From positions 186,001 through 250,000 of IMG/VR virus record IMGVR_UViG_3300005289_000016: a stretch of DNA of 64,000 nt; one strand, written 5' to 3'. A program made the translations under genes and the position numbers. Shown in pieces: positions 4,595 to 64,000 of this stretch. The notes beneath the pieces are model-generated. The model was not told the origin of the DNA and ran no database searches. It saw only the letters and a list, made by a program, of their open reading frames with translations. Within the stretch, counting starts at the first letter, position 1. The number at the start of each line of letters is the position of its first letter.

Positions 4595-4625
4595 GGCGAG
4601 GGCTTCGGCTCTCGCCTTTATGCCG
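4595..4625 (+). terminator. intrinsic terminator
   Basis: GGCGAGGGC-TTCG-GCTCTCGCC then TTTATGCCG. Confidence 0.78.
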
Positions 4626-4659
4626 ATTCGATTGAACTTTATTTCAACAATACATGATT
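4624..4659 (+). promoter_or_regulatory. putative phage promoter, copy 2
   Basis: CGATTCGATTGAACTTTATTTCAACAATACATGATT; shares an 18-bp core with 210-227. Confidence 0.65.
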
Positions 4660-4698
4660 GCGGTGTATCAACCCTAACCTAGTAATAAGGATCGCATC

Positions 4699-4878: not shown

Positions 4879-4888
4879 GGAGATAGCA

Positions 4889-5251: not shown

Positions 5252-5282
5252 CCTACCCTATCCCCATGCTAAGGAGCATGTC

Positions 5283-6241: not shown

Positions 6242-6290
6242 CGGCATAAGGAGAGGACCCCATGGGGTCCTCTCCAGTGCTTTCTTTTTT
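6242..6290. terminator. bidirectional terminator
   Basis: CGGCATA, then GGAGAGGACCCC-AT-GGGGTCCTCTCC and a T tract, between convergent genes. Confidence 0.78.
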
Positions 6291-6292
6291 CT

Positions 6293-7399: not shown

Positions 7400-7437
7400 C
7401 GATCCTTAAAAGGTGGGGACCCGAAGGCCCCCGGTAG

Positions 7438-16064: not shown

Positions 16065-16127
16065 AGTGGGATGTCGTCTATCGAATGGGGGAGGGAAGCC
16101 GGTGTTGCCACCGGCATGCCTGAGCAG

Positions 16128-18608: not shown

Positions 18609-18790
18609 TGGATGATGCCCTAGCTGTTGATTCTGAGACCAAGATTGGTGATTGGTTGGCCCTCTATGCATAATGTATCCGGTCTAAATTTCTTTTGTAA
18701 ATTGAACCGTATTATGACCACACATTATCGACTCGATGGACATGTAAATTAAAAAGGAGTGGGGCCTTTATATGTACGTCAGGGGGATTT

Positions 18791-28442: not shown

Positions 28443-28567
28443 GACCCGTGCAGTAAAAAACTGCAATGGTATGCAAAACTTGCGAATGCGCTGAGCGATG
28501 ATAAAGAGACCTCAGTATGCCTCGCAGTAAATCGCAGCGCGCGCTGCATATTCCGCGGAGAAACACA

Positions 28568-30826
28568 ATGAGCGTAGTAGGTAAATCGGCTCGCACCAGT
28601 CAGCAAACGCTGAATGCGCAGGCCACAGCCATTCAAGAGAAATTCAAGCAGGGCGGCATCGTTGGTAACAGCGCGATTGCCTCCATGGAATCCTTGACCA
28701 CCCTGGACCACGAAAACCTGTTCGCCTCCATGGAATCGGCCGTGCTGTCCATCGGCGAAACCGTTTCGATGGAAGCGCTGGGCGACTTCGGCCTGAACGC
28801 CGCTGACCTGACCCGTGCTCAGAAAGACGCCATGGGCGTGATCGCAATGGCCGCTCTCGAGCCAGGTGACTACGCTCGTCGCGCTCTGGGTGCCAGCGAC
28901 ATGTCGGCTCCGAAGACCGGTACCGTGGTTTCGGTTGAATCCATGGGCGACTTCGACTTCCAGGAGAAGGCCAACCCTTCGATGGAAGCGTTCGACAACT
29001 CGAACCTGACCGACTTCATCGGTCTGTCGATGGTTTACAACCAGAAAGCGGCCAAGCAGGGCGAGTTCGCTGAAGCGTTCTACCGCACTGTGATCCTGAC
29101 TCCGGAACAAGGCGGCGCTGACGTCACCATCCGTAGCCACCTGGTTCTGAACCACTTCCTGCACAACACCCGCGGCGACCACGCCGATTTCAAACAGCGC
29201 CGTCTGCTCGAAGCTGCGATCAACTACAAGATCCTGGCTGACCAGTCGACTACTCTGGTTCCTGAAATCCACGACGGCAACAAAGACCTCTTCGTCGCTG
29301 AAAGCGTCGTTGAGCCACGTTCCGTTGAACTGGGCAACCGTACCGTCACCACTTCCGCCCTGCTGATCGGCAAGCGCGTGAACCTGGTGGGCCTGGCTCA
29401 GAACAGCCTGGTGAAGATCGCTGGTCAAGCGAACCAAACCGATGCTCTGGACCGCGCCGTTGGTCTGAAGACCCTGTACGTCCGTAAGGGCGATGCTGAC
29501 GTTCTGGCATTCGACGTCGAAACCCTGCCTCGCGCTGCCTTCATCAAAGGCAACCAAGGCCTGGCTCGCGAACTCGAGCTGAACTTCCGTACCAGCTCCT
29601 TGCAGCTGAACGCGAACAGCGTCAACTACAAGGGCGAAGTGCTGACCAACCCGATCCTGAAGCAGATCGTCGACGGTGACTACCGTGTGACTCTGGCTGT
29701 TACCGTAACTGGTAACGTGGACACCGAGAAGGCCAACGCCACCGTCAACGCCGCACCGATCGTTGTCGACAAAATCGTCAACGCTGCTGGTGAAGTGCTG
29801 GCTCTGGACAAAGCGGGTCCTGGTAAGGACATCGCCGACGCCCTGGCTGACCTGGTCATCATCGGTTGGGAACCGAACGCTCGCCTGTCCAACGCCAACC
29901 GTCGTCTGCGCGGTCTGCAACTGAACAGCTCCGAGTACACCGAGCGTTACCCAGTAATGCTGGGCAGCCCGTTCTCGATCCCGAGCCCGCTGCAAGAAGC
30001 TCGTGGCATGGCCGACATCGACCTGCTGGTTACCGCTGCGCGTCTGCGTAACGACAACATGGCGATCACCACCCTGCTGCGCTTCACCGACGGCCTGAGC
30101 CGCTGGAAGTTCCTGACCGACGCCATCAACTCTGACGACCTGCTCCCAGAAGTTGAAGGTATCGCTCGCTTCCTGGTCAAGCCATGGTACCGTGAGCGCG
30201 ACCTCGACCTGCGCAAGCTGGTTGTGTCCCTGCGTTCGTACGACCGCGTTCAAGACGTTCAGGCTGCTCTGGCCAACGTTCTGCGTAGCGACATCCAGGA
30301 CTGCATCCTGGAATCCAACTACAAGACCGCGCTCGATGCGTACACCGGCTACACCGGTGAGAAGGTCCACGTTCTGATCGGTTCCGATCCGAAGACTGCC
30401 TCGTACATCATCACCACCGGCGACAGCCGTACTCTGGGTGACGACATCACCTTCGAGAAGGTGTCGGCAGTTGACCAGCGTATCCGCAAGCAGATCTTCT
30501 GGACCTTCAAGCGTCAAACCGAAGGCCTGGACCCTCTGAACTGCGGTACTCACTTCTGGATTCCAGAGCTGATCTCCCACGTGAACGTATCGCGTGACGA
30601 GACCCAGATCCGCGAAGCCATGGTTCAGCCGCGTAACCGTCACGTTAACCACCTGCCGATCTTCGGCAAGATCAACGTGATCGGCCTGGACGAAGTACTG
30701 TCGGAGGGCTGGCACATCCCAGTTGCCACATTTCCAGTTACCGGTGACGACACCACCGGTGGAGAAGGTGGCACTGACCAGCCTGTTGCCCCAGGTGATA
30801 CCGGCAATGGCACCACCCAGCCTTAA
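28568..30826 (+). CDS. major capsid protein (phiKZ gp120 type)
   Basis: About 752 aa, very strong codon bias, N-terminal propeptide with repeated SMES/SMEA protease sites, synteny with DnaB and RNAP beta. Confidence 0.88.
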   Translation: MSVVGKSARTSQQTLNAQATAIQEKFKQGGIVGNSAIASMESLTTLDHENLFASMESAVLSIGETVSMEALGDFGLNAADLTRAQKDAMGVIAMAALEPGDYARRALGASDMSAPKTGTVVSVESMGDFDFQEKANPSMEAFDNSNLTDFIGLSMVYNQKAAKQGEFAEAFYRTVILTPEQGGADVTIRSHLVLNHFLHNTRGDHADFKQRRLLEAAINYKILADQSTTLVPEIHDGNKDLFVAESVVEPRSVELGNRTVTTSALLIGKRVNLVGLAQNSLVKIAGQANQTDALDRAVGLKTLYVRKGDADVLAFDVETLPRAAFIKGNQGLARELELNFRTSSLQLNANSVNYKGEVLTNPILKQIVDGDYRVTLAVTVTGNVDTEKANATVNAAPIVVDKIVNAAGEVLALDKAGPGKDIADALADLVIIGWEPNARLSNANRRLRGLQLNSSEYTERYPVMLGSPFSIPSPLQEARGMADIDLLVTAARLRNDNMAITTLLRFTDGLSRWKFLTDAINSDDLLPEVEGIARFLVKPWYRERDLDLRKLVVSLRSYDRVQDVQAALANVLRSDIQDCILESNYKTALDAYTGYTGEKVHVLIGSDPKTASYIITTGDSRTLGDDITFEKVSAVDQRIRKQIFWTFKRQTEGLDPLNCGTHFWIPELISHVNVSRDETQIREAMVQPRNRHVNHLPIFGKINVIGLDEVLSEGWHIPVATFPVTGDDTTGGEGGTDQPVAPGDTGNGTTQP

Positions 30827-53422: not shown

Positions 53423-54148
53423 TTACGCCACCCGAAGGTTGTTCGGGTGCAGGCCGTCCACGTACTTCTGAGCCACCTTGGCAGCAGCTTCAGCTTTGGT
53501 GATCAGACCATCGCGGTTGGCATCCAGGCCCTTGTTCTGAAGGTAGGCCTTGGTCTTGGTGTTCGCTTCACTGAACAGCACGTAGTCTTCAGGCTTGCCC
53601 ACAGCAGTAGGTAGAAGTATCCTCATGTAGATGTCACTGAGGGTCTTCAACTTGCCAGTGTACGGCTTGAAGAAGTTGTAGACGTAGTCGAGTTGTTGCT
53701 CGGCAGTCATCTTCAGCAACGCAGGGAGCGAGGTCTTCGAATCCTTCGCTGCCGCAGCGCCGAACTGAATCAGACCGTAGTACGGAGCACCTGCACCGTT
53801 GGCCACGGTAGGACTGAAGGTACCACCGGTCTCGAACGCCATGCAAGACATCAGCGTATCGGTACCGTCCCATGGCAAGGCCAGATCGGTAGCGATCTTG
53901 TTGGTCTTGCGCAGGAACTCATCGGAGACCTTGGCAGACCACGCAGGAGCCTTGCAGTAAGCGAACAGGGTCGCATTGATACCATCGGCAGCCGTCGATG
54001 GCTTCGACATGTTCACGGCCTTACGGCGAGCGTTCAGGAAGGCACCGTGGGATGCCCCACCCCAGATACCGTCGATGACGCCAGCGTAGAAACCCAGCGC
54101 TTTGAGGTTACGCTGAAGTTCCTTCAGTTGTTCTTTAGTTGCCGCCAT
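53423..54148 (-). CDS. modular endolysin (N-terminal peptidoglycan-binding domain plus lysozyme/transglycosylase-like domain)
   Basis: LQRNLKALGFYAGVIDGIWG (PG_binding_1); MAFETGGTFSP...GLIQF; EF-hand-like DANRDGLITKAE. Confidence 0.85.
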   Translation of the reverse strand: MAATKEQLKELQRNLKALGFYAGVIDGIWGGASHGAFLNARRKAVNMSKPSTAADGINATLFAYCKAPAWSAKVSDEFLRKTNKIATDLALPWDGTDTLMSCMAFETGGTFSPTVANGAGAPYYGLIQFGAAAAKDSKTSLPALLKMTAEQQLDYVYNFFKPYTGKLKTLSDIYMRILLPTAVGKPEDYVLFSEANTKTKAYLQNKGLDANRDGLITKAEAAAKVAQKYVDGLHPNNLRVA

Positions 54149-54782
54149 TGTTGATACCCTCGAGGTAGGCTTGCATGGCCGGGTAGCAGTCCCGGAGTTT
54201 GGCGAAGGAGTAGTTGCTCATCTGCGCCTGGATCATCTGGTCATCACGACCCGTCAGACGCCAGTCAAAGCGAAGACCTTCTTGCACCAGAGTCAGAGGG
54301 GTGTTGGCACCGGCCTCGTACTTGGTGATGTGGACCGCGTTGGCGTAATCCCACGGCGACTTCTGTAGCAGACGCCATGCCGCAGAGCTGGCCACTTGTT
54401 CCGCCGATTCCTGAGCAAAGGACAGCAGGGACATTGGCTCAGCCAGCACCTTGTTGTTCAGGAAGTCGTTGACGATGGCATCTTCAAGGTACAGCAGCTT
54501 AGGCGTGATGGTGCCCTTGGTGCGGAAGTACAGCTTGGTGATACCTGGACGCTGGCGAGGGATGTACGGTTGAACATCACCGCCCAGATGCGGAGCAGGT
54601 TGACCTTCTGGCCACCATTCGATGGTGTAGCCGACGATGGCGTATTGCAGATCGCTCAGGTAGTTGAAGACAGTGGCGTCTTTGATGCGGCAGTTGGCAC
54701 GCAGTTGCACACCGGAGTTGTCCAGCAGGCGAATGGTGCGGAAGTGACCGCGGTCCGGACCTGTGTAGAGTTCGTCAGCCAT
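54135..54782 (-). CDS. hypothetical protein of the radical-SAM cassette (215 aa)
   Basis: Starts 2 nt after the oxygenase stop codon; overlaps the endolysin start by 14 nt. Confidence 0.75.
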   Translation of the reverse strand: MADELYTGPDRGHFRTIRLLDNSGVQLRANCRIKDATVFNYLSDLQYAIVGYTIEWWPEGQPAPHLGGDVQPYIPRQRPGITKLYFRTKGTITPKLLYLEDAIVNDFLNNKVLAEPMSLLSFAQESAEQVASSAAWRLLQKSPWDYANAVHITKYEAGANTPLTLVQEGLRFDWRLTGRDDQMIQAQMSNYSFAKLRDCYPAMQAYLEGINNGGN

Positions 54783-54784
54783 GG

Positions 54785-55336
54785 TTACGCCTTGAAGTGG
54801 AAGTCATTGATCAGCGACAACCGCAGTTGCGCAGGGTTAGCAGCAACGCTGTGCTGGATGTAGCTCGGCATCAGCCACAAGTCACCAGCTTTCGGCGAGA
54901 TGTAGTGTTCGCCGAAGTGCGAGTCACGCACAGCACGCGGATAACCACGCGATGCATTGAAACGCGGGTCGATTAGCGACATGCCGGCTTGGGAATCTTC
55001 CGGGTAGTACACACTGGTCAGGCAGGAGTTGCCATGTAGGTGTGCACTCAGACCTTCCTGATGATCGAAGGCCTTGCCGAAGGTGTCGATCATGACTTCT
55101 TTCGGCATGACGTTGAAGATCTTCTGGATGTAGTCTTCGGCCACAGGACGCAGGATCACGTCACGGAAGTGAGTCAGGGCCGGGAACATCTCAGGGGTGA
55201 TTTCCAGCGGAGTCTGCGAGTTCCGAGGGGACATGCAGTGCAGCTGATGGATCTCATCAATGAGGGCCGCGTTATCCACTTGGTCCAGCAGATTGACGTG
55301 ACCGATCTCGATTTTCCATGGTTGGAAGAGTTTCAT
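54785..55336 (-). CDS. 2OG-Fe(II) oxygenase-like protein (TIGR02466 / 2OG-FeII_Oxy_5 type), paralog 3
   Basis: HLHGNSCLTSVYY, IDPR, PKAGDLWLMPSYIQHSV, RLSL. Confidence 0.85.
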   Translation of the reverse strand: MKLFQPWKIEIGHVNLLDQVDNAALIDEIHQLHCMSPRNSQTPLEITPEMFPALTHFRDVILRPVAEDYIQKIFNVMPKEVMIDTFGKAFDHQEGLSAHLHGNSCLTSVYYPEDSQAGMSLIDPRFNASRGYPRAVRDSHFGEHYISPKAGDLWLMPSYIQHSVAANPAQLRLSLINDFHFKA

Positions 55337-55350
55337 TGAACGTCCCTATG

Positions 55351-55908
55351 TCAGTTGGGGTCGAGGAAGTAATCGTTGACGAAGGAGAGGCGTAGCTCAT
55401 CCCGAACGGGGTTAACCGAATGCAGGATGTAACTTGGGATGATGTACACATCCCCAGCCTTAGGCTCGATCCGGTAGTTACCGAAGTGTCCACGACTGAT
55501 GTGGCTTGGATAACCACGAGCAGCATTGCCCCGCGGGTCAACCAAGACCAGACGTGACGCAGCATCAACCGGATACATCACCACAGTCAGACTCGACATA
55601 GCGTGGATGTGATGTTCGAGGTCTGCTCCGTCCTGGATACATACACATTGCGACAAAATGTCGACATCCGCAGCTTCAAGGCTCAGGTCGAACTCAGTGC
55701 GAATGTACTCAAGGACTTTCGGAGTGATGCAGCGATCACGCAGGTCCACCAGATCCGCTACCTCAGGAGCGTTGGGATCAACGGATACGAAGCTGCCGTT
55801 GACTTGCATGCTGTTGGCCAAGATAGCACCAACGATGAGATCAAGGTCCACCTGATCAGCAATGTTGAACTTACCGATGGTGGTGGTCCAAGGTTGGATA
55901 CGTTCCAT
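55351..55908 (-). CDS. 2OG-Fe(II) oxygenase-like protein, paralog 2
   Basis: HIHAMSSLTVVMY, VDPRG, PKAGDVYIIPSYILHSV, RLSF. Confidence 0.85.
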   Translation of the reverse strand: MERIQPWTTTIGKFNIADQVDLDLIVGAILANSMQVNGSFVSVDPNAPEVADLVDLRDRCITPKVLEYIRTEFDLSLEAADVDILSQCVCIQDGADLEHHIHAMSSLTVVMYPVDAASRLVLVDPRGNAARGYPSHISRGHFGNYRIEPKAGDVYIIPSYILHSVNPVRDELRLSFVNDYFLDPN

Positions 55909-55910
55909 GG

Positions 55911-56474
55911 TCAGAGATCCGTGATGACGTAGTATTCGTGCAGCAATGAGAGACGGGTAGCCTCGTCGACATTGGGCACACTGTGTTGGACATAGCTCGG
56001 GAAGATCAGCACATCGCCCGCTTTCGGACTGACTTTGAAGTTGGCAAAGTGCGGGCTATTGCGCATGCGCTTGGGATAGCCACGACAAGCATTGCCTTTC
56101 GGGTCGAACATGACCAACGAATTGGTCGAGTCGCTTGGGTAGCAGATGGCAGAGATCACAGAGCCAGGATGGTAGTGCGGAAACAGACCTTGCCCTTCAG
56201 GAATCCACTTGCCGTTGGTGTCGACGTGGAATTCATTGATGTTGAACGCAAAGTGTTCCTTGGCGTACTCCATCACCTTGGGTGTAATGATCCGGTCCCG
56301 CATCTCGAGGATGATCGGGAAGAGTTCCCTGTTCTTGATGACCAGTTGACGATCGTCTTCTCCGTCAGTCATTGCAAACAACGACAGGACTTCATCAGCA
56401 TACGCTGCCATGTCGAACTGATCGGCTACGTTGAACCGCACCAATGGAACAGACCACAGGTTGAGTGTTTCCAT
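55911..56474 (-). CDS. 2OG-Fe(II) oxygenase-like protein, paralog 1
   Basis: HYHPGSVISAICY, FDPKG, PKAGDVLIFPSYVQHSV, RLSL. Confidence 0.85.
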   Translation of the reverse strand: METLNLWSVPLVRFNVADQFDMAAYADEVLSLFAMTDGEDDRQLVIKNRELFPIILEMRDRIITPKVMEYAKEHFAFNINEFHVDTNGKWIPEGQGLFPHYHPGSVISAICYPSDSTNSLVMFDPKGNACRGYPKRMRNSPHFANFKVSPKAGDVLIFPSYVQHSVPNVDEATRLSLLHEYYVITDL

Positions 56475-56476
56475 GG

Positions 56477-56908
56477 TTACTCCGTGAGGGATGCGATCCC
56501 TTCCTCAGTGCACTCGAGCAGACAGTACTTGACCGACTTGGGAGCCCAGCCGCCTTTGATCCAGTCCGGCATGTCTTTCAACCGTTTTAAGATCGCTTCG
56601 TACGTTTCTGGATCGCAACTGTACGGGACGAAGTACGGGTCCTGATTAAGGAACAGGTCCTTGTCGTCGAGGATGGTCCGAACAGGCAGGTTGTAGAGAT
56701 CACACAGCGTGAAGGCGTAGATGATGGCCACGGCGTAACTCTTAGCCGGGTACACCAACGGGAATTCAGCCTTCTGGAAGTACGCCAAGGCGTTCTCTAC
56801 TAGCTCACCACTTTCGACGAACTCCATCAGGGAGAAATCGTCAGTGTGCTCGGTGACCAGCAGATTATAGAGCTGCTGGTATTCTTTATAAGGGAGAGTG
56901 TGCATCAT
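56477..56908 (-). CDS. hypothetical helical protein of the cassette (143 aa)
   Basis: GAGGA RBS; tightly packed between the radical-SAM-like and oxygenase genes; YPAKSYAVA and LFLNQDPYF segments. Confidence 0.75.
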   Translation of the reverse strand: MMHTLPYKEYQQLYNLLVTEHTDDFSLMEFVESGELVENALAYFQKAEFPLVYPAKSYAVAIIYAFTLCDLYNLPVRTILDDKDLFLNQDPYFVPYSCDPETYEAILKRLKDMPDWIKGGWAPKSVKYCLLECTEEGIASLTE

Positions 56909-57950
56909 GTTCCTCTTTGGTCATCAGATCCCAGCGGTTCTTCATGTCGATGAGGCATTTTTCAGAACCCGTTTCTTCCATCAGGCGCTGAACGTCACAC
57001 CGTGAACAACTATCGAGGAAACAGCAGTCGCCACACTCAGGATGTGCACTGTATTTCTCAAGGTTACGGTAGTACGCTTCTTGCCGGTCTGCGATCACAG
57101 CTTCGGCAGTCCACGGCTTTGCCAGCTTGAAGTTGTCTTTGTAGATGGTGAGGTTCTCTACCAACACAATGGTCGAATAGAGGGAGCCGCCACGGTAGGT
57201 GAATTCATACCCTTCCTTGTTGCCTGGAATCAATGGTACAAATTCAACGGTATTCACACGCTCTTTTGCAAAGTCAGCGAATACCTTCAGATCTCGCTTG
57301 AACCGCTCGGCATTCATGATGTTGTCGAAGCCTTGGCGGGCTGCCACAAAGGGGAACTCAATCACCTTGTGGATACCTTCGCCGAAGTCCATGTAGCGGA
57401 TCTTCTTGAACGCCTCGTCGCTGAAGTGAGCAAGGTTACCTTCCTCGACGTTGATGGTGGCATACAGGCGACTGAACTCTGCTTTCTTCATCATGCCTTT
57501 GAATCGCGCAAGGCGATCCTTGAGGATGGCGACGTATTTGTCGTTGCAGATATTCTTCAAGGTGATGGGTGTGCCAACGTTGACATACTTGCCGGGCATC
57601 AACTCATCCATCAACTCAGCGACTTCTTCCAGATGGCGATCATGGAGCATCGCCATGTTGATCGTCAGCACTTTAAAGTGAGCAGCGATCTTGCGAAACG
57701 ATGGGTGGCGCAATACCTGAAACCCGTTGTCCGCACTGGTAATGTCGGTCGGCCCTAACTTGAGTTCCAGCAGACGGAAGTCGTGGGCTTTCAAGTCTTC
57801 GAGCAACGCTTCCAAATCAGCCGTGTCTTCATCAGACATGTCGAAGGGAGCGAAGTTCTTCTCGACAGTACAGCCGGGGCAGCTATAGCCACACCCCTTG
57901 AGGACTTCCAGACCCAAGTTAAAGGTCTGGGATACACGTTCACTGAACAT
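56886..57950 (-). CDS. radical-SAM-like protein, non-canonical (CxxxCxxC = CGYSCPGC)
   Basis: N-terminal Cys triad; GPTD in place of GGE; C-terminal CGDCCFLDSCSRC Cys cluster. Confidence 0.7.
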   Translation of the reverse strand: MFSERVSQTFNLGLEVLKGCGYSCPGCTVEKNFAPFDMSDEDTADLEALLEDLKAHDFRLLELKLGPTDITSADNGFQVLRHPSFRKIAAHFKVLTINMAMLHDRHLEEVAELMDELMPGKYVNVGTPITLKNICNDKYVAILKDRLARFKGMMKKAEFSRLYATINVEEGNLAHFSDEAFKKIRYMDFGEGIHKVIEFPFVAARQGFDNIMNAERFKRDLKVFADFAKERVNTVEFVPLIPGNKEGYEFTYRGGSLYSTIVLVENLTIYKDNFKLAKPWTAEAVIADRQEAYYRNLEKYSAHPECGDCCFLDSCSRCDVQRLMEETGSEKCLIDMKNRWDLMTKEEHDAHSPL

Positions 57951-58968
57951 ACTGCAACCCCACTAGGCAGTCTTTGATTGACATGTGTTGCATGATCGCG
58001 CTGATGCCCTTCTCAGAGCAGCTACTGATGTAGGGGCACGTCATACAGGGCGTGTCCTTCAAGTACTCCAGAGACGCATCCAGAGCCTTCTGACGCACTG
58101 TCAAGAGGTTCTCCATGGTCCATGGCTTAGGGATGGTGAACTCGTCGTCTAGGAACGGGCAATCATCCTTCAAGAAAGGCACCCAGTACAGCTTACCGTC
58201 GGTGTACAGCAAGTTGCACATGGTCCCAGTGTCATAATGCAGGTCTGGGTTACGTCGACGTTCATCCTGACCTTCAAGCTCAGAGTAGTACTGCGTGATG
58301 CGGTAACTCATGCGCTTGATCTGCTCACTCACCATCAGGGTCTTTTGTTTAACCCGACCGTAAGGGATGTTCAGGATGTCATCTTTGTCCACAGGGAACT
58401 CAACGTCAAACCCAGCCCGCATGAACTCCTCGAACTTGTCGTCCACGGTGTCCTGCGTGCAACTGATAACAAAGCCAGCCTCATTCAAGTACGCCGATTG
58501 CATGGTGTTCTTGATGTGGGAAAGCTTCTTACCCACCATGTTGCCGAACTTCTCATTGCGGAAGAAGTACGGCGCAGCAGGGATCAGGAAGCGGATAGGC
58601 TTACCTGGCACTGATTGATCGATCTCAGCACACATACTCGTGTACTTGTCCATGTTCGTCTCAAGGAACGCTGCGTTGAACGTCACCTGATGGAACATCT
58701 GAGCCATCTCTTGGAACTCAGGATGGGCCATGACCTCATCTTTGTTGCTGGCAGTCATGTAGTCGGTAGGGCCGACACCCAGATCGAACGCCACGTAACC
58801 TGCTGTGGTCATTTCCGTCAGCAGGTCCTTCAGGGCAGCGAGGTCATTGACATCACCGCCCATGGCCTTGTCGATCATGCATCCGGGACAGACGTGTCCG
58901 CACCCTCGGAATAGATCAAGCGTGATTTCCAGCCGCTGTCTGTGCTGGACGAAGTGTGGAGATTCCAT
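57940..58968 (-). CDS. radical-SAM-like protein, non-canonical (CGHVCPGC)
   Basis: N-terminal Cys triad; GPTD; C-terminal CMTCPYISSC; paralog of 56886-57950. Confidence 0.7.
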   Translation of the reverse strand: MESPHFVQHRQRLEITLDLFRGCGHVCPGCMIDKAMGGDVNDLAALKDLLTEMTTAGYVAFDLGVGPTDYMTASNKDEVMAHPEFQEMAQMFHQVTFNAAFLETNMDKYTSMCAEIDQSVPGKPIRFLIPAAPYFFRNEKFGNMVGKKLSHIKNTMQSAYLNEAGFVISCTQDTVDDKFEEFMRAGFDVEFPVDKDDILNIPYGRVKQKTLMVSEQIKRMSYRITQYYSELEGQDERRRNPDLHYDTGTMCNLLYTDGKLYWVPFLKDDCPFLDDEFTIPKPWTMENLLTVRQKALDASLEYLKDTPCMTCPYISSCSEKGISAIMQHMSIKDCLVGLQYVQ

Positions 58969-59879
58969 TGGTCAAGTAACCCCTTGAAGCCGTTACAGGA
59001 GTGAGTCAGATCTTTCACCTCCCGAAGATGCTCAGAGAGGCAGTGACCCATGTAGTTACAGGAAGAGCAGTGACCATTGGTCGTGACTGCTTCTTTTTCT
59101 TTGGCACACCACGCAAGGTAACCAGCAACGCCATCCACATCGAGGAAGAACTCGTTGTCATTGGCATCGAACTCAAGCACAGCCAGAGAGCCCGTCGGTG
59201 TGATGTAGAGGTGATCGTCACTGAAGGCATTACGCGTACCTTCAGCCGCCTCTTTCACTTGCCGCTCATTCTCAAAGTAGAACTCTCGCTCAGGGTGTTC
59301 AATGACAGCCCAGACGAAACGCTCAAACTCATCAAACGGCACGTTCTGGGCATTGGCCTGGTTCGTGCTGTAGGGTTTGATCTCGACGTCCTTTGCATTG
59401 GCCAGCATGTTCATGGTCTGCACGAACGTATCGACGCTCACGGTGTCCAGGAACTTGCGAGAGGCCAACGTCAGGATGGTGAAGGGACGCGTCAGCATGA
59501 AAAGGTTGTTCAACACCCGGTCATGCATCTCCCGTGCTTCAAAGTCATACGACACGCTGAGGTCGAAGTCCAAGTCCTCGGTGATCTCGTTGAGCAACGT
59601 GAGGTTCGAGACCAACACGATATCATCCAGACCGTACCGGTGCAGGATCTCTTTCATCTCCAGCAGGTACTCGGGAGGCAACAGCAGGACTTCCCCACCG
59701 TAGATGTCGATGTGCCCAACGTCATAGTGCTCAAGGATCTCCAGCAGCCTTTCTTCAAAGACGCCCAAGTCCATGCGTGTCCGATCACCCAACTGCTCTG
59801 GTGTGAGATAACAGAACTCACAGCGCAGGTTACAGTAGTAAGACGGGTTTACGCTGAGGTTGATTTTTGGCTTAGGCAT
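58875..59879 (-). CDS. radical SAM/SPASM-type protein
   Basis: CNLRCEFC, YGGE, C-terminal CSSCNYMGHC...C; 3' end overlaps the next gene by 94 nt. Confidence 0.88.
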   Translation of the reverse strand: MPKPKINLSVNPSYYCNLRCEFCYLTPEQLGDRTRMDLGVFEERLLEILEHYDVGHIDIYGGEVLLLPPEYLLEMKEILHRYGLDDIVLVSNLTLLNEITEDLDFDLSVSYDFEAREMHDRVLNNLFMLTRPFTILTLASRKFLDTVSVDTFVQTMNMLANAKDVEIKPYSTNQANAQNVPFDEFERFVWAVIEHPEREFYFENERQVKEAAEGTRNAFSDDHLYITPTGSLAVLEFDANDNEFFLDVDGVAGYLAWCAKEKEAVTTNGHCSSCNYMGHCLSEHLREVKDLTHSCNGFKGLLDQWNLHTSSSTDSGWKSRLIYSEGADTSVPDA

Positions 59880-60091
59880 TTGATAAGTTCTCGCTGGTAG
59901 GGATTCAATGGAACTCCCATGGAATCCTTCATTACATCGAGGAAGTCATCCACGTTCTCGGTGCACCGTTTGATGACGACCTTCTTCAAGACCTCAGGGA
60001 TCTGAAGCTTGAGTTCGTAGCCCGGTGGGAAGAAAGCCATTTGATCGACGATCATGGTCAAGTCCTCAGAGAATCGTGGAACCACTTTCAA
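59849..60091 (-). CDS. small hypothetical protein (68-80 aa; start 60091 or 60055)
   Basis: ORF track; fills the gap inside the cassette. Confidence 0.5.
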   Translation of the reverse strand: MKVVPRFSEDLTMIVDQMAFFPPGYELKLQIPEVLKKVVIKRCTENVDDFLDVMKDSMGVPLNPYQRELIKCLSQKSTSA

Positions 60092-60272
60092 CTGACTTGG
60101 AATGTTTCATAGCCAGTTCATGGATGCTCTTGCGCAGGTCAACTTCGAAGTCGGCAAAGCCCACCGACGTCATGGTCAGTCCACGAGCCACCAGCTGACG
60201 TATGATCGCTTCGCCTTCCCGCTCGAGGGTGGTGGTAAGTTCTTTCTTCAGTTGTTCATGACCGTATTTCAT
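60066..60272 (-). CDS. small hypothetical protein (68 aa)
   Basis: Starts 2 nt after the radical-SAM stop codon. Confidence 0.55.
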   Translation of the reverse strand: MKYGHEQLKKELTTTLEREGEAIIRQLVARGLTMTSVGFADFEVDLRKSIHELAMKHSKSVESGSTIL

Positions 60273-60274
60273 GG

Positions 60275-61363
60275 TTAGCCTTTCGCGATGAGTTGGACAG
60301 ATTCGTCCACGTAAGGTGTTGGGATCAGGTATTCAGTCTGACCGTTCAATTCAATGATGCGAGGAGCCAGCGTCTTCATCTTCTTGCAATGATGTTCAGC
60401 CAGACCCAGTCGTTTAGTGTCAGCCACCGTCTTACGGCAACCGTTGCACACAGGGAACATCGGACACTCGTTACAGGCGTCCTTCATCGACCACAGTTCT
60501 TCCTGATTGCGCAGTGGAGTGAAGAACTCACCCGCCATCTCTTTCTCGAAGTCGATGGGGTACTTGAGGTCGTCACCAAAGGCTCCACAGGAGAAATACT
60601 GGTTGCCCGGTTGCAGACTGCGGATACCGCCATCGCAATCACGGGACAGAGGGCAGATGGTGTTCTGCGTCGACAGGCGCTTGACCAATTGCTTGGTGTT
60701 GAACTCCCACTGCATGAGACCAGCGTCGTAGATTTCAAGGTACTTCTCGTACATGTCAGCCTGAGTGTACATGGTCTCAGCGTTGCCCATGGAGACGCCC
60801 TTGTTGAGCACCACAGGACCAGAAGCTACCGCGTAGTTAACCTTGGCCTCTACGCCCATCCGCTGAGCCAGACGCACCGTGTCAAGGACCGTGTGCTCAT
60901 TGCTCTTATCGACGACTGCAATGAAGTCAGGACGATAGCCAATGCGCTCAAGGAACAGATCACTGACTGCCCAGAACTCTTCTTCAGTGAACGGCGTCTT
61001 ATCGCCCTTGAGGCGTGCATCGCCGTACTGGAACGAGGTCGTCACACCCAGACGTGGATGACGGAACAACTCTTCCCACATCTCAGGCTTCTTGTAGAAA
61101 GGCCAGAGGTTGCTGGTGAAGGAGATCGACGCATCGGACTCCAGACGGTCTAGGATCGCGATCAGGTCCCAGTAATACTGCACAGGCATCATGAGAGGGT
61201 CACCGCCGTTAACGATGATGGTGCGCGTCTCAGGGTACCGTACGATGAACCGTTCCACATCCTCCAGACTCACGACCTCATTGGCGTCATCGGTCAGGTA
61301 GGTGCTGGAGCAAAAGGTGCACTTGAAGTTACACCGCTGCGTCGGCTTTAGGATCAGGTCCAT
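60275..61363 (-). CDS. radical SAM/SPASM domain protein (362 aa)
   Basis: KPTQRCNFKCTFC, NGGDP, SPASM-like CPLSRDC...FSC...CNECPMFPVCNGC...C. Confidence 0.92.
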   Translation of the reverse strand: MDLILKPTQRCNFKCTFCSSTYLTDDANEVVSLEDVERFIVRYPETRTIIVNGGDPLMMPVQYYWDLIAILDRLESDASISFTSNLWPFYKKPEMWEELFRHPRLGVTTSFQYGDARLKGDKTPFTEEEFWAVSDLFLERIGYRPDFIAVVDKSNEHTVLDTVRLAQRMGVEAKVNYAVASGPVVLNKGVSMGNAETMYTQADMYEKYLEIYDAGLMQWEFNTKQLVKRLSTQNTICPLSRDCDGGIRSLQPGNQYFSCGAFGDDLKYPIDFEKEMAGEFFTPLRNQEELWSMKDACNECPMFPVCNGCRKTVADTKRLGLAEHHCKKMKTLAPRIIELNGQTEYLIPTPYVDESVQLIAKG

Positions 61364-61544
61364 CGGTGTTCCCCTTGTTCTCGTATTTGCCCGTCCAGAC
61401 ACCAAGGTAATCTCGACGGAATTGTTCGTGCTCTGGACTACGCGCTTCCTCTAACTTCTTACGAAGCCAGGTATCGTCACCCAGCTTACGAGGGAACCGA
61501 GGTACACGTGGTAGGCGACGCATTGGTAGGATGGGGTCGGTCAT
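61329..61544 (-). CDS. small basic protein (71 aa, MTDPILPMRRLPRVPRFPRK...)
   Basis: GGAG RBS before the ATG at 61544; follows an AT-rich intergenic region. Confidence 0.5.
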   Translation of the reverse strand: MTDPILPMRRLPRVPRFPRKLGDDTWLRKKLEEARSPEHEQFRRDYLGVWTGKYENKGNTDGPDPKADAAV

Positions 61545-61596
61545 GGATAACACTCCAGATATATTCATAGGAATGTTTGAGTGAAGTTTTAAATAG

Positions 61597-61626
61597 CGGA
61601 CATAGGGGAGGGACGAGCCCTCCCCG
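61597..61626 (-). terminator. terminator-like hairpin inside the cassette
   Basis: GGGGAGGG/CCCTCCCC stem immediately after the 61630 stop codon, followed on the minus strand by TATGTCCG. Confidence 0.6.
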
Positions 61627-61629
61627 AGT

Positions 61630-62628
61630 CTACAAGACGACTTTGAACATCTCTCGGATAGAGCAGACCTTGGACTTGCTGTCCAAGACCTTGTCGTGCA
61701 GGAAACAACGCAGCCCACACCGGGAGTAGTACTCGCACTCAAAGCAACCGTAATGTTCCACGAATGCAACCTCAGCAGCGTCCTTGGCAATCAAGCCTTC
61801 AGTCTCGTCTAAGATCGCATCCTTACCTGCTTCAGACCAACAGGTACTGATCACGCCATCCTTGTTGATGATCTTGGTGGAGCGACACGTGGTCTCATTG
61901 ATCACGTTGTTCTTCCAGTCCTTGATCGGATACGAGTTCGGGTACTTGTTGTTCAGCGCAATGTACATCGTGCTGATCAGGTCTTCGTCAGGTTGGTGAT
62001 GCAGGTACATCTGACTGGGGATGTAATGATCGAAGTACACATCGTACCGTTCACACATCTCAGCAAACTCCTCGCCTTCTTTACCGTCAAGGAATGTCTG
62101 GATGTTCTGTTTGGTGATCACCACGTTGACCGTCTGGACCAGATCACCCAGCGTCTCGAGGTTCTTGAAGAACAAGGCTCGTTGAGCAGGATTGAATCGA
62201 CCAGCGGGGTCATAAGACGTGGCCAGCCAGACACGCTCATCAATCACCCGAAGGCGTTCGATAAGGTGCCTGACTCGGTCAGTGTTGTGATAAACGAGGT
62301 TCGTGCCAAAGACCAGTTTGATGTGCTTGAAGTGACTCAAGGCCATCTTGCCGGCTTGGTAGTAAGCTTCGAAGAGTTCGTCGCTCACCTCGTTCATGAA
62401 CAGTTCACCGCCTGTGAAGTTAACCACCATGGCTGTGTCTGGATGTGTAGTCGCCAACAACTTAGCAACCTTGTCGATCACTAGATCCCCGTCGAGACCC
62501 ACTTTGGAATCGTGGTCCTGGTGGCAGAATGAGCAGCGCATGTTGCACAGCTCGAACAGAATCAGGTGAGCTTCTTTCCACTTACCTTTCTTCTCACGCA
62601 GGATGTCTACAACAGGGATCAGGTTCAT
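61630..62628 (-). CDS. radical SAM/SPASM-type protein (332 aa)
   Basis: CNMRCSFC, TGGE, C-terminal TTC...STC...CFECEYYSRCGLRC...C. Confidence 0.88.
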   Translation of the reverse strand: MNLIPVVDILREKKGKWKEAHLILFELCNMRCSFCHQDHDSKVGLDGDLVIDKVAKLLATTHPDTAMVVNFTGGELFMNEVSDELFEAYYQAGKMALSHFKHIKLVFGTNLVYHNTDRVRHLIERLRVIDERVWLATSYDPAGRFNPAQRALFFKNLETLGDLVQTVNVVITKQNIQTFLDGKEGEEFAEMCERYDVYFDHYIPSQMYLHHQPDEDLISTMYIALNNKYPNSYPIKDWKNNVINETTCRSTKIINKDGVISTCWSEAGKDAILDETEGLIAKDAAEVAFVEHYGCFECEYYSRCGLRCFLHDKVLDSKSKVCSIREMFKVVL

Positions 62629-63692
62629 TACCAGTTCGCTCCCTTGACGCAGTCCTTCAGGACGTCGACTTGTTCCGACAGGATGTACCGCACGAGGTTC
62701 TCGTCGTACTTGCCGGAGTCAGCGTTAGGCAGAGCCAGACGCTTGGCACCTTTGAACATGGTCAGCACCCGCTGCTTCAACACCTCAGGATCAAGGAGGT
62801 CTTCATCGGACGTGAGCAACTGATAGACCAGTCGAGTACGGCCCGCAGTCGGACCCTCGTCGCAATGATCCAACACGGTGATCAGTTCCAGAAGCAGGCC
62901 CTTGATCCACACGTCCGTTGGCTTGTTGTCGAACAAGTTCGGCTGGAGGAACATGGTGCTGTTCAGGTAGTGGAAGTTCAACGTACCTTCGAACACGCTC
63001 TGCCCATTGAGCAGGGTGTTCATGTCAGCACCGGCGAAGTCCCAGGCTTCCGGGTTGGCGATCTGACGACCCCATACGTCGAGAGCATCGTAGCCGTTGG
63101 CCAGCGCGATGCGACGCAGGATGTTCTTCAGAGTCTTTGGCAGCTTGCCCACACGGTTGTCGGTGAACAGACGCATGATGCGCCATTCCAGCGACAGCGA
63201 GTCTGGGTTTTCAGTAACCAGCTCACCGAACACTTCCTGATGAGGATCTTCGAACGCGAACAGTTCTTGAACGACCTGCTCGTTGATGGTCACTTCGTTC
63301 AGGATGTTGGTGGTCGGCTTGTGCATGTTCAGCAGCGACACCTGGAAGGTAGCCTTCTTGCAGAGCATGATCCAGCGGAACACGTCGATCGTGACGTTAG
63401 GCATTACTGCCTTGACCAACATGGTGTACAGGCGCAGGTAGGTCTGACCGTCGACGTAGACGAACACCTTGTCGTCTTGGCTGAAGATCTTGTCGAACAG
63501 GTCCTTGAACACATCGCCTTCAAGCGCGTCCAGAGACACCGCATAGCCAAGTTGCTCAGAACTCTCCTCGTACTCCGCCGGGTGATACTCAAAGCCCACA
63601 CGTGGACTGATGGTGGCGTACGGAATACGCTTACGTGAGATACGGGATTCGATCTCGACGTAGATTCGGTCACGCAGATGGTACATGTTCAA
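62628..63692 (-). CDS. hypothetical protein of the cassette (354 aa)
   Basis: Stop/start overlap with the radical-SAM gene; GGAGA RBS; no recognised motif. Confidence 0.78.
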   Translation of the reverse strand: MNMYHLRDRIYVEIESRISRKRIPYATISPRVGFEYHPAEYEESSEQLGYAVSLDALEGDVFKDLFDKIFSQDDKVFVYVDGQTYLRLYTMLVKAVMPNVTIDVFRWIMLCKKATFQVSLLNMHKPTTNILNEVTINEQVVQELFAFEDPHQEVFGELVTENPDSLSLEWRIMRLFTDNRVGKLPKTLKNILRRIALANGYDALDVWGRQIANPEAWDFAGADMNTLLNGQSVFEGTLNFHYLNSTMFLQPNLFDNKPTDVWIKGLLLELITVLDHCDEGPTAGRTRLVYQLLTSDEDLLDPEVLKQRVLTMFKGAKRLALPNADSGKYDENLVRYILSEQVDVLKDCVKGANW

Positions 63693-63999
63693 TCTCCTTG
63701 ACCGTCTTGTTCATCTGCTCAACAAGAGCATTGAACTGTTCAGGGACTTCCTGACCGATCAAGGCCATGAAGAAAGGGTTGTTCTGGTGAGCGAAGAACG
63801 CAAACAGGTTGGCCCCAGCGAAGCAGTATTCGTTGAAGAACAACTTGTTCCAGTTCCAATCGCTCTCTTCGATGCCCATGCAGACCAACGGGAAGTTGTC
63901 ATGAGCAATCAACTTGACGAAGTTCAGACCTACGAGGCCTTCTTCTTCATCTTGCGGGTAGTTCAGGACTTCTGACTTGAGGTCTTCTTTGCACTGGAA
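63670..63999 (-). CDS. 3' part of a cassette gene that starts beyond the window
   Basis: Frame open from the window edge (FQCKEDLKSEVLNYPQ...KEIEHVPSA); the 80-aa track ORF is its internal part. Confidence 0.7.
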   Translation of the reverse strand, partial: FQCKEDLKSEVLNYPQDEEEGLVGLNFVKLIAHDNFPLVCMGIEESDWNWNKLFFNEYCFAGANLFAFFAHQNNPFFMALIGQEVPEQFNALVEQMNKTVKEIEHVPSA

Positions 64000-64000
64000 G

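Follow-up and report, generated by a model that had tools for sequence, protein, structure and literature searches.

A phage cassette of radical SAM and radical-SAM-like enzymes linked to a CHxS-tailed protein, its putative substrate

What does a jumbo phage do with a dense block of radical SAM enzymes and iron oxygenases, and on which molecule do they act? The question is raised by the DNA analysed here, a stretch of 64,000 nucleotides (the window) from a 276 kb IMG/VR contig (IMGVR_UViG_3300005289_000016, positions 186,001 to 250,000). An initial annotation, made from the sequence alone, had described a cassette of five radical-SAM(-like) proteins, three 2OG-Fe(II)-type oxygenases and unknown partners at 54135-64000. 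It had inferred a dedicated multi-step modification pathway, most likely acting on a phage peptide or a virion/tail protein. The arrangement is confirmed: the minus strand of 53423-64000 carries an unbroken series of ORFs with gaps from -94 to +85 nt, and about 15 tightly packed, co-oriented genes fall in 54135-64000. Loci used for comparison are denoted by L numbers; L004 is the reverse complement of window 52631-73692, L017 carries the minimal version of the cassette, and DT01 is Pseudomonas phage pPa_SNUABM_DT01. The genes within the window are the following.

53423..54148, minus strand: downstream boundary gene, a 241-aa lysin-like protein with a peptidoglycan-binding N-terminus (weak PF01471/PF08823 hits); the DT01 homologue (77% identity) is annotated as a putative transglycosylase. 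It is absent from the distant versions of the cassette and not part of its core.
54135..54782, minus strand: hyp215, an unknown protein found only in the Pseudomonas-type lineage (L001 and L005-L008), without Pfam, PHROG or NCBIfam hit.
54785..55336, minus strand: 2OG-Fe(II) oxygenase paralog 1, 183 aa (PF13759, 41 bits against a cut-off of 27; phrog_81).
55351..55908, minus strand: 2OG-Fe(II) oxygenase paralog 2, 185 aa (PF13759, 34.6 bits).
55911..56474, minus strand: 2OG-Fe(II) oxygenase paralog 3, 187 aa (PF13759, 49.5 bits); the only PDB relatives are uncharacterised structural-genomics proteins, 3bvc and 2rg4.
56477..56908, minus strand: hyp143, a conserved accessory protein of unknown function (phrog_20737, E 1.3e-35), with homologues in 11 loci, including Atu_ph07 and the distant metagenomic phages, and no PDB relative.
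56886..57950, minus strand: rSAM_F, a radical-SAM-like paralog of 354 aa with CX3CX2C and a C-terminal CX2CCX4CX2C...C cluster (Cys306, 309, 310, 315, 318, 332), 25% identical to rSAM_E (E 8e-33).
57940..58968, minus strand: rSAM_E, a radical-SAM-like paralog of 342 aa, in which Cys23, Cys27, Cys30, Cys308, Cys311, Cys317 and Cys334 are invariant across 13 homologues.
58875..59879, minus strand: rSAM_D, a radical SAM enzyme of 334 aa with a 5-Cys twitch or partial-SPASM C-terminus (PF04055, 36.7 bits; phrog_1802, E 5.6e-37), with homologues in L001-L003, L005-L008, L010, L011 and L013.
59849..60272, minus strand: two small overlapping ORFs (80 and 68 aa), a lineage-specific insert outside the core; only the 80-aa ORF has a homologue, and only in DT01, while in L005-L007 rSAM_C and rSAM_D abut directly.
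60275..61363, minus strand: rSAM_C, a radical SAM/SPASM-like enzyme of 362 aa and the most conserved one (PF04055, 45.8 bits), 54-61% identical even in Atu_ph07, L010, L011 and L017; its best NCBIfam hits (DynA, MoaA, anSME) are all far below cut-off.
61329..61544, minus strand: a small 71-aa ORF in the rSAM_B/rSAM_C spacer, variable between lineages; it is similar only to the DT01 spacer ORF, and L005-L007 carry a different small ORF there.
61630..62628, minus strand: rSAM_B, a radical SAM enzyme of 332 aa with a full 7-Cys SPASM motif, CX14C...CX2CX5CX3C...C (PF04055, 28.7 bits, just below the cut-off of 29.5; phrog_1802, E 1.6e-33).
62628..63686, minus strand: hyp354, a conserved unknown protein with a likely ATG start at 63686 and no family or PDB hit; an HMM finds homologues in the same position in L010-L012, and a protein of about 360 aa occupies the same slot in L017.
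63670..64000, minus strand: 3' part of hyp280, which always neighbours the CHxS-tail gene (phrog_20767; AF2 model with pLDDT 93 and no PDB fold match).

rSAM_B, rSAM_C and rSAM_D all have CxxxCxFC, GGE/GGD and C-terminal CX2CX5CX2-3C clusters. Three details of the initial annotation need correction. The two paralogs it called non-canonical, rSAM_F and rSAM_E, do carry a canonical CX3CX2C (CGYSCPGC and CGHVCPGC) and a C-terminal Cys cluster; however, they lack GGE (with GPTD in its place), have no Pfam hit and align to rSAM_A (see below) only weakly in a profile-profile comparison (probability 2%), and cannot be shown to be radical SAM enzymes beyond their motifs. The likely start of the rSAM_C gene is the ATG at 61363, not the TTG at 61405. 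Lastly, the 80-aa ORF at 63670-63912 is the 3' end of a gene of about 257-280 aa that runs past the end of the window.

The initial annotation had suggested looking beyond position 64000 for a Cys/His/Ser-rich precursor or a tail-fibre gene; both are present in the source contig. In extrapolated window coordinates, the cassette continues as follows.

Start of hyp280: about 64443 or 64512.
64564-65103 (L004:8590-9129): pre179, the 179-aa CHxS-tail protein, encoded about 560 bp beyond the window end.
65105-66139 (L004:7554-8588): rSAM_A, the sixth radical SAM enzyme.
66141-66653 (L004:7040-7552): JmjC-like cupin oxygenase.
66678-68123 and 68194-70584: two tail-fibre-like proteins, followed by an opposite-strand gene and then the PAAR and spike genes.

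The 179-aa protein ends in C-H-x-S-C-H-x-[S/N]-C-H-x-x-R-[G/S]-R-R-stop. In an alignment from nine loci, 10 of the 14 invariant columns lie in the last 16 residues, although the bodies are only 25% identical, and all 120 listed database homologues end in the motif. The family is large: an index-free HMM search yielded 732 representative clusters at 50% identity (E<=1e-3). Of the best 150 members, 123 have the strict motif, and most of the other 27 are 2- or 4-repeat, CHxN, extra-Gly or contig-truncated variants. Every invariant residue shows synonymous codon variation, with Ser encoded by both AGY and TCN and Arg by CGN and AGR, showing purifying selection on the tail. The AF2 model of the protein has a pLDDT of 89 and a pTM of 0.81; the last 15 residues have low confidence, consistent with an exposed tail, although confidence in a monomer model is uninformative about accessibility in an oligomer.

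The cassette is not a chance arrangement, as the same gene order recurs in 16 other loci from at least five phage lineages. In all 17 loci rSAM_A is located directly upstream of the tail protein gene and the hyp280-like gene directly downstream, with one extra gene in between in L002; an Fe/2OG oxygenase precedes rSAM_A, and rSAM_C follows within a few kb. This includes eight loci (seven independent) retrieved through the tail protein alone. rSAM_A and rSAM_C are the two universal radical SAM enzymes. The radical SAM genes of pPa_SNUABM_DT01, for which the literature only notes "six radical SAM genes", and the radical SAM/cupin/2OG genes of Ralstonia RSL2/RSF1 and Burkholderia FLC6/S13 are the same cassette, gene for gene, with the tail protein annotated as hypothetical.

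All six enzymes have CX3CX2C; A and B have full SPASM Cys motifs, while C, D, E and F have partial ones. The NCBIfam neighbours of rSAM_A are peptide and protein maturases (anSME, YhhB, AmcB, PapB, FxsB and DynA), each aligned over nearly its full length, but none of the enzymes reaches the cut-off of any curated single-function family. None has an N-terminal RRE-size extension, as in the protein maturase anSME. In the cupin, H107-x-D109...H147 and K122 are invariant; it passes the Pfam JmjC_2 cut-off, and its profile hits the histidyl hydroxylase MINA53 (2xdv) at E 9e-6.

A link to tail fibres is suggested by the position of the cassette, which always follows fibre-like or giant virion protein genes, and by domain fusions. 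Family member P0253 has a Peptidase_S74 intramolecular-chaperone domain right after a (CHxS)4 array, and P0169 has an N-terminal Gly_rich_2 domain. Members P0047-49 have about 13-15 CHxS units but sit in an unchanged enzyme set, which implies iterative action. Adjacency to fibre genes may, however, only reflect insertion into a plastic region: RP31 carries a different radical SAM cassette at the equivalent place and no CHxS protein.

Taken as comparative-genomic evidence only, these observations support the inference of a multi-step pathway acting on a phage peptide or virion protein; the analogy with phiKZ gp144 made in the initial annotation played no part in this. With moderate confidence, we favour a phage-encoded, RiPP-like protein maturation system, whose inferred substrate is the flexible C-terminal tail C-H-x-S-C-H-x-S/N-C-H-x-x-R-G-R-R of the 179-aa protein, carried on a novel globular domain. 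rSAM_A and rSAM_C would use 5'-deoxyadenosyl radicals to modify the repeated Cys/His/Ser units iteratively. In the larger versions, rSAM_B and rSAM_D, the divergent rSAM_E/F pair, the JmjC-like Fe/2OG oxygenase and one to three PF13759 oxygenases would add further tailoring, for example His or Arg hydroxylation; hyp280, hyp354 and hyp143 would be non-enzymatic or novel accessory proteins. Candidate chemistries are thioether cross-links, His-C2-to-Cbeta cyclophanes, conversion of Cys/Ser to formylglycine, and hydroxylation. There is chemical precedent, as radical SAM enzymes are known to make His-C2-to-Cbeta cross-links on His-x-X motifs (PMC11499958) and HxsB/HxsC mature a His-x-Ser repeat protein (PMC13128918). 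Nevertheless, co-localisation does not prove an enzyme-substrate relation, a CH-rich tail could simply bind metal on a trimer axis, and the RiPP analogy is incomplete, as no RRE, protease or transporter is recognisable.

Other readings are less likely. The 160-aa domain could be a large leader, with the 16-residue CHxS/RGRR core modified, cleaved off and released as a small bioactive peptide, for example a metallophore or an agent acting on host or competitor cells. The C-terminal placement of the core behind a conserved recognition-like domain, the expanded, multi-core-like arrays of P0047-49 with NV(P)V/A linkers, and the predominance of RiPP enzymes among the SPASM maturase neighbours would fit such a true RiPP. 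However, no peptidase or exporter is recognisable in any of the 17 loci, the "leader" is a confidently folded domain in the model, and the fusions to the Peptidase_S74 chaperone and Gly-rich fibre domains and the constant position in the fibre module point to a structural protein. It is equally possible, and equally unlikely in our view, that the tail is no substrate but a metal-binding (Fe, Zn or Fe-S) trimerisation or tip motif of a fibre-associated protein, and that the enzymes act on the neighbouring fibre proteins, a host envelope component or a small molecule. The alternating Cys-His ligands do have a fixed 4-residue period, a trimerisation chaperone domain directly follows the array in P0253, and fibre-like proteins are always adjacent. 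On the other hand, no other conserved candidate substrate motif was found in the cassette, the fibre proteins are not homologous between lineages whereas the tail protein and rSAM_A/C are, and the gene order of rSAM_A then tail protein is invariant, even in the minimal cassette.

A role of the matured protein in phage-host conflict rather than in virion structure appears doubtful, for instance as a counterpart or decoy of the HxsA-type His-x-Ser effector that interferes with DNA entry of competing phages, or as a factor counteracting HXS-like defence. The bacterial effector is matured by two radical SAM enzymes and blocks phage DNA entry (PMC13128918), the minimal phage cassette also has exactly two radical SAM enzymes plus small partners, and the tail is strongly basic (3 His, 3 Arg). 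Yet the phage enzymes match HxsB and HxsC only through the generic radical SAM core (E 1e-4 to 1e-6, 18-27 bits against cut-offs of 268-370), there is no HxsA or HxsD match, and no signal peptide or peptidoglycan-binding domain was found in the 179-aa protein. Least likely is the synthesis of a modified nucleotide (DNA/RNA hypermodification) or a cofactor, with an incidental tail protein. Weak MoaA, QueE and viperin-like hits to the radical SAM cores, and two genuine DHFR genes inserted in the Ralstonia/Burkholderia version, could be read this way; but those hits cover only the N-terminal cluster-binding region and lie far below cut-off, no kinase, transferase or nucleotide-binding partner is conserved, the DHFR genes are lineage-specific, and the cassette sits in the tail module, not the replication module.

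The closest analogue is the HXS anti-phage system (HxsA-D; TIGR03976-03979; Li et al., Nat Commun 2026, PMC13128918), of which the cassette is not a member. In HXS, a ribosomal protein with tandem, basic His-x-Ser units is matured by paired radical SAM enzymes plus a small partner, and the minimal phage cassette likewise has two radical SAM enzymes, but HXS is bacterial and defensive, and its effector has a peptidoglycan-binding domain and period-3 HxS repeats without Cys. The phage enzymes, tail protein and partners do not match the Hxs models, and the phage version adds up to four more radical SAM(-like) proteins and four oxygenases and sits in a tail-fibre module. The anaerobic sulfatase maturase (anSME, TIGR03942) and QhpD/QhpC are likewise SPASM enzymes without an RRE domain that modify Cys/Ser in a short motif of a protein. 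anSME is the top NCBIfam neighbour of rSAM_A, but with 51 bits against a cut-off of 349. The last unit of the tail, C-H-x-x-R, has an Arg at +4, as appears to be the case in the sulfatase C/S-x-P/A-x-R motif, although it lacks the Pro/Ala at +2; here, multiple enzymes would act per substrate, in a phage setting. Triceptide, or three-residue cyclophane, synthases (YhhB, AmcB, FxsB, HtkB, HaaB; PMC11499958) act iteratively on repeated aromatic-x-X units, a pattern that H-x-S units fit. YhhB, AmcB and FxsB score 40-50 bits against cut-offs of 370-445; triceptide precursors are short peptides with leaders, while here there is an invariant Cys in every unit, on a 160-aa folded carrier. Sacti- and ranthipeptide maturases (PapB, SCIFF maturases) cross-link Cys-rich repeated cores, and PapB is among the hits for rSAM_A, B and D, but far below cut-offs, and the tail has no acidic acceptor residues and the enzymes no RRE.

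The product of the cassette is probably a tail-fibre- or baseplate-associated virion component, not a released peptide, although its localisation in the virion is inferred. Linked in every locus examined to a small phage protein with a CHxS tail, the cassette looks like an undescribed, widespread viral protein-modification system.

The minus strand of window 53423-64000 carries an uninterrupted series of open reading frames, with gaps running from -94 to +85 nt. Within it lie three tandem 2OG-Fe(II) oxygenases, confirmed by profile searches, and a group of radical SAM or radical-SAM-like proteins:

54785-55336, minus strand, PF13759 oxygenase (41 bits)
55351-55908, minus strand, PF13759 oxygenase (34.6 bits)
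55911-56474, minus strand, PF13759 oxygenase (49.5 bits)
56886-57950, minus strand, rSAM_F, radical-SAM-like paralog
57940-58968, minus strand, rSAM_E, radical-SAM-like paralog
58875-59879, minus strand, rSAM_D, radical SAM enzyme
60275-61363, minus strand, rSAM_C, radical SAM enzyme
61630-62628, minus strand, rSAM_B, radical SAM enzyme

The oxygenases exceed the PF13759 cut-off of 27 bits but do not reach that of the TIGR02466 subfamily (62.5), against which they score 17-36. For the radical SAM domain (PF04055, cut-off 29.5), rSAM_C (45.8) and rSAM_D (36.7) pass, while rSAM_B (28.7) and a sixth protein encoded beyond the window, rSAM_A (29.2), fall just below but match phrog_1802 at E<=1e-33 (1.6e-33 for rSAM_B). 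All six proteins carry a CX3CX2C motif near the amino-terminus (Cys13/17/20 in A, 28/32/35 in B, 11/15/18 in C, 16/20/23 in D, 23/27/30 in E and 20/24/27 in F), and these cysteines are invariant in the family alignments. This includes rSAM_E and rSAM_F, which the initial annotation had called non-canonical. The two are 25% identical to each other, have GPTD where GGE is expected and have no Pfam hit. Since a profile-profile comparison with rSAM_A is weak (probability 2%), we refer to them only as radical-SAM-like. By inspection, rSAM_A and rSAM_B have the complete C-terminal seven-cysteine SPASM motif, CX9-15GX4C...CX2CX5CX3C...C, although rSAM_A scores 25.7 on TIGR04085 against a cut-off of 27. 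rSAM_C has CX2CX5CX2C plus flanking cysteines, and D, E and F have partial motifs. As called, rSAM_D and rSAM_E overlap by 94 nt (58875-58968); the C-terminal 30 residues of rSAM_D are not conserved and its homologues are about 305 amino acids long, so one of the two gene boundaries may differ from the longest-ORF call.

None of these enzymes could be assigned to a curated radical SAM family. Scores against the anSME, MoaA, viperin, QueE, PapB, DynA, Hxs and cyclophane synthase models are all far below cut-off; for the anaerobic sulfatase maturase model (TIGR03942, cut-off 349), rSAM_A scores 51.4 bits and rSAM_C 32.4 bits. Small open reading frames of 80, 68 and 71 amino acids lie between the radical SAM genes, at 59849-60272 and 61329-61544. 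They were considered as precursors and rejected, as they are conserved only with Pseudomonas phage pPa_SNUABM_DT01; other relatives have a different small open reading frame of about 50 amino acids, or none, at these junctions, and rSAM_C and rSAM_D abut directly in three of the related loci (L005-L007). A scan for sigma-70 promoters and terminators gave no enrichment, which is uninformative for a phage with its own RNA polymerases.

The window is part of the 276-kb IMG/VR contig IMGVR_UViG_3300005289_000016. The only cultured relative at the DNA level is pPa_SNUABM_DT01 (81% identity over 1 kb), which has the same cassette gene for gene. The rest of the window (7438-47427) encodes typical jumbo-phage functions: a 1228-aa helicase-like protein, class I ribonucleotide reductase subunits (14880-18671), a DnaB-like helicase, a phiKZ-type major head protein (28517-30826), a polymerase-like protein and a 1301-aa virion protein. 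Beyond position 64000 the operon continues upstream, in locus L004, the reverse complement of window 52631-73692, in the following order.

Genes beyond the window end, with L004 coordinates
start at 9250 or 9181, end 10023: hyp280, about 257-280 aa, the 3' end of which is the 80-aa open reading frame at window 63670-63912
8590-9129: pre179, the 179-aa tail protein
7554-8588: rSAM_A, sixth radical SAM enzyme, 344 aa, full SPASM motif
7040-7552: cupin, 170 aa, PF07883 and JmjC_2 PF08007, both above cut-off
5570-7015: fibre-like protein, 481 aa, phrog_2163, E about 1e-132
3109-5499: fibre-like protein, 796 aa, phrog_2163, E about 1e-132
1669-2964: opposite-strand gene, 431 aa, phrog_3337
1360-1626: PAAR protein, 88 aa, PF05488
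557-1360: baseplate spike-like protein, 267 aa, phrog_3216

The cassette is therefore embedded in the baseplate and fibre module, and it ends at a lysin-like gene (53423-54148, minus strand). The two fibre-like proteins (L004:3109-7015, extrapolated window 66678-70584) share an N-terminal domain and carry four to six copies of a repeat of about 50-60 residues centred on N-N-P-H-x-x-T-K-A-Q-V-G-L-G-x-V-x-N, which Pfam does not recognise.

The 179-aa protein ends in I-C-H-T-S-C-H-S-N-C-H-C-A-R-G-R-R-stop. The same C-terminal pattern, C-H-x-S-C-H-x-[S/N]-C-H-x-x-R-[G/S]-R-R, closes the homologue in all nine loci first examined, including those of Ralstonia phage FLC4-5C (RSL2-like) and the T4-like giant Agrobacterium phage Atu_ph07. 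In their alignment, 10 of the 14 invariant columns fall in the last 16 residues, although the bodies diverge to 25% identity. A word-indexed search of 5.8 billion proteins found 255 homologues. An index-free HMM search of 1.84 billion representatives found 732 clusters at 50% identity at E<=1e-3, and 359 at E<=1e-10. Of the best 150 representatives, 123 have the strict motif; most of the others are close variants, with two or four units, CHxN, an extra Gly before RxRR, or contig-truncated ends. One homologue (P0031) is deposited as a protein of 'Streptomyces sp. CHB9.2' on a 241.7-kb contig, the size and content of which suggest a jumbo-phage contig inside a bacterial assembly and not a bacterial gene. 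A tblastn search with the aquatic-type tail protein against cultured phages gave no match. Codon alignment of 12 loci shows synonymous variation at every invariant residue (TGC/TGT, CAC/CAT, Ser as both AGY and TCN, Arg as CGN and AGR); the constraint is therefore on the peptide and not on the DNA.

AlphaFold2, with a 113-sequence alignment, predicts a confident compact alpha/beta domain for the tail protein (pLDDT 89, pTM 0.81), with low confidence for the last 15 residues, as expected for a flexible tail. Foldseek finds no PDB analogue at E<=0.001, and in BFVD only family members. The model of hyp280 is also confident (pLDDT 93) but has no PDB fold match at the same threshold; its N-terminal part is at best weakly STAS-like (6jhk, E 0.13). 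Sequence searches of the PDB with the tail protein, hyp280, hyp354 and hyp143, the latter two being proteins of unknown function from the cassette, gave nothing significant. The 18 nt that encode C-H-S-N-C-H at the end of the tail-protein gene (L004:9091-9108, extrapolated window 64585-64602) are repeated exactly 96 nt downstream (L004:9187-9204, extrapolated window 64489-64506). The copy sits behind an AGGAG ribosome-binding site and an ATG and is in frame with hyp280, giving a possible N-terminal extension M-S-C-H-S-N-C-H-A-N-A-G-R-S. Two related loci, L005 and L008, have M-T-C-H-S-S and M-T-C-H-V-S at the same place. It could be a remnant duplication, a second mini-substrate or a regulatory decoy.

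Seventeen loci carrying the tail protein were examined (L001-L015, L017 and L018, the last two being near-duplicates). In every one, rSAM_A lies directly upstream of the tail gene and the hyp280-like gene directly downstream, with one extra gene intercalated in L002, the locus of Ralstonia phage FLC4-5C. An Fe/2OG oxygenase precedes rSAM_A; it is the JmjC-like cupin in 15 loci and another 2OG oxygenase in L017/L018. rSAM_C follows within a few kb wherever the contig extends that far and is the most conserved protein, at 54-61% identity across all lineages. Eight of the loci (seven independent) were retrieved through the tail protein alone, so for them the presence of the enzymes is an unbiased test. 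The enzyme complement varies between lineages. The minimal version, L017, consists of fibre genes, oxygenase, rSAM_A, tail protein, hyp243, hyp360 and rSAM_C. Atu_ph07 adds rSAM_B, rSAM_D and hyp143, and the Pseudomonas and Ralstonia types add the E/F-type paralogs and one to three PF13759 oxygenases. The aquatic metagenomic type adds a B12-binding radical SAM enzyme of the class-B methyltransferase type inside the cassette (L010:13521-15251 and L011:13914-15410). In the Ralstonia/Burkholderia version, two genuine dihydrofolate reductase genes (PF00186, E 1e-46 and 2e-18) are inserted between rSAM_B and rSAM_C (L002:10817-12032).

The cassette always follows fibre-like or giant virion-protein genes, even though those genes are not homologous between lineages: collagen-like and DUF4815 giants in L010-L014, a 4450-aa structural protein in Atu_ph07, and phrog_2163 fibres in the Pseudomonas, Ralstonia and L017 types. 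Family member P0253 carries a Peptidase_S74 intra-molecular chaperone domain (PF13884, 44.8 bits against a cut-off of 22, E 1.5e-11) immediately after a (CHxS)4 array. This domain is probably typical of trimeric tail fibres and spikes and appears to cleave itself off after folding; it is absent from the 179-aa protein itself, and its presence in P0253 is indirect evidence for a fibre-like role of the family. Another member, P0169, has an N-terminal glycine-rich fibre-type domain. Members P0047-P0049 have about 13-15 C-H-x-S units, arranged in blocks separated by N-V-(P)-V/A linkers before the final RGRR, yet sit in a cassette with the usual enzyme set (L012). This implies that the enzymes act iteratively on units and not one enzyme per unit. 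P0263 has a poly-Pro spacer and a second short CH unit. In Ralstonia phage RP31 (L016, record 79172-86742), a different radical SAM cassette occupies the equivalent position after the fibre-like (YomR) genes, with a 537-aa radical SAM protein, an anSME-like protein, a MoaA-like protein and an MgoB-like protein, and no CHxS protein. The preceding 125-aa open reading frame is rich in H-T-H and Tyr motifs. RP31 ORF70 and ORF71 are not CHxS-type proteins. Fibre-adjacent radical SAM cassettes may be a broader, polymorphic theme.

Taken together, six proteins with the radical SAM cluster motif, four of them with auxiliary-cluster motifs, a JmjC-type Fe/2OG centre and three PF13759 oxygenases accompany an invariant tail on a dedicated carrier protein. 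We infer that rSAM_A and rSAM_C bind the tail and use 5'-deoxyadenosyl radicals to abstract hydrogen from the repeated units. Three chemistries are plausible, each with precedent among SPASM enzymes: Cys thioether cross-links of the sacti- or ranthipeptide type; His-C2-to-Cbeta cyclophanes on H-x-S units, of the triceptide type, for which His cross-links have been shown for HtkB and HaaB (PMC11499958); and oxidation of Cys or Ser to formylglycine, as by anSME, the top neighbour of rSAM_A, which aligns over nearly its full length despite the low score. The cupin scores 37.9 bits on PF08007 (cut-off 22), and H107-x-D109...H147 and K122 are invariant in 11 homologues. Its closest characterised relatives are ribosomal-protein hydroxylases (MINA53, 2xdv, E 8.7e-6), making hydroxylation of the invariant His or Arg a reasonable guess for the oxygenases. 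The radical SAM enzymes start 10-27 residues before the cluster motif, which leaves no room for an N-terminal RRE, as in maturases that act on proteins. hyp280, hyp354 and hyp143 may be scaffolds, chaperones or new enzymes.

The arrangement of a C-terminal motif encoded directly after rSAM_A in 17 of 17 loci resembles a RiPP precursor next to its maturases, and a genuine RiPP whose core is cleaved off and released is possible. However, no RRE (PqqD-like) domain, leader peptidase or exporter was recognised by Pfam or NCBIfam in any cassette protein, although novel accessory proteins could still fill these roles, and the domain fusions point to a structural role. The tail might instead be a metal-binding trimer motif that is not a substrate; this is chemically attractive and not excluded, but no other conserved candidate substrate motif was found in the cassette for the universally linked rSAM_A and rSAM_C. 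A nucleotide or cofactor pathway is supported only by generic core hits and by the two lineage-specific dihydrofolate reductase genes.

A conflict function related to the bacterial HXS system, in which HxsB and HxsC mature a His-x-Ser repeat effector that blocks phage DNA entry (PMC13128918), is a striking parallel, but none of the phage proteins matches the Hxs models. The best scores are 26.6 bits for rSAM_A against HxsB (TIGR03978, cut-off 370) and 23.2 bits for rSAM_C against HxsC (TIGR03977, cut-off 268); nothing matched the tail protein, hyp280 or hyp354 even at E<=10, and hyp143 gave no NCBIfam hit at E<=0.01. The tail does contain three H-x-S/N units, but with period 4 and an invariant Cys. 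As a tentative extension of the reading of the tail as substrate, tailed phages of several unrelated lineages would use two to six radical SAM enzymes plus Fe/2OG oxygenases to build a covalently cross-linked, possibly metal-binding, Cys/His/Ser 'ladder' at the C-terminus of a dedicated fibre- or baseplate-associated protein, needed for adsorption or genome delivery. This would be a previously unrecognised, widespread class of viral post-translational chemistry, and the phage-side mirror of the bacterial HXS defence effector.

The initial annotation had proposed a dedicated modification pathway acting most likely on a phage peptide or virion/tail protein, and had suggested looking beyond position 64000 for a Cys/His/Ser-rich precursor or a tail-fibre gene. 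This interpretation survives our computational tests and is sharpened by them, as the predicted Cys/His/Ser-rich target and the fibre genes lie just beyond the window. The paper on pPa_SNUABM_DT01 notes 'six radical SAM genes' and suggests DNA repair or metabolic boosting (PMC8541153), while papers on FLC6, S13 and RP12/RP31 list radical SAM, cupin and 2OG genes without interpretation. Radical SAM/SPASM maturation is known for bacterial peptides and a few cellular proteins, but we found no report of a phage structural or accessory protein matured by its own set of radical SAM enzymes, nor of a phage radical SAM/RiPP/tail-fibre system. The system would belong to radical SAM/SPASM maturation of a ribosomal product, but it matches no known family, is virus-specific and widespread, and is linked to the adsorption apparatus.

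The family, with its sharply defined 16-residue putative target, spans phiKZ-like, T4-like giant and uncultured aquatic phages. Cultured members exist in pPa_SNUABM_DT01, RSL2/RSF1, FLC6/FLC8/S13, Atu_ph07 and Phosso, and a jumbo phage of P. fluorescens SBW25 described as similar to DT01 (JPTI55) is also in culture. If confirmed, the proposed maturation would add new enzymology, in the form of iterative radical chemistry on C-H-x-S units, and would explain a conspicuous 'dark' block of jumbo-phage genomes. It could also reveal a new determinant of adsorption, virion stability or inter-phage conflict.
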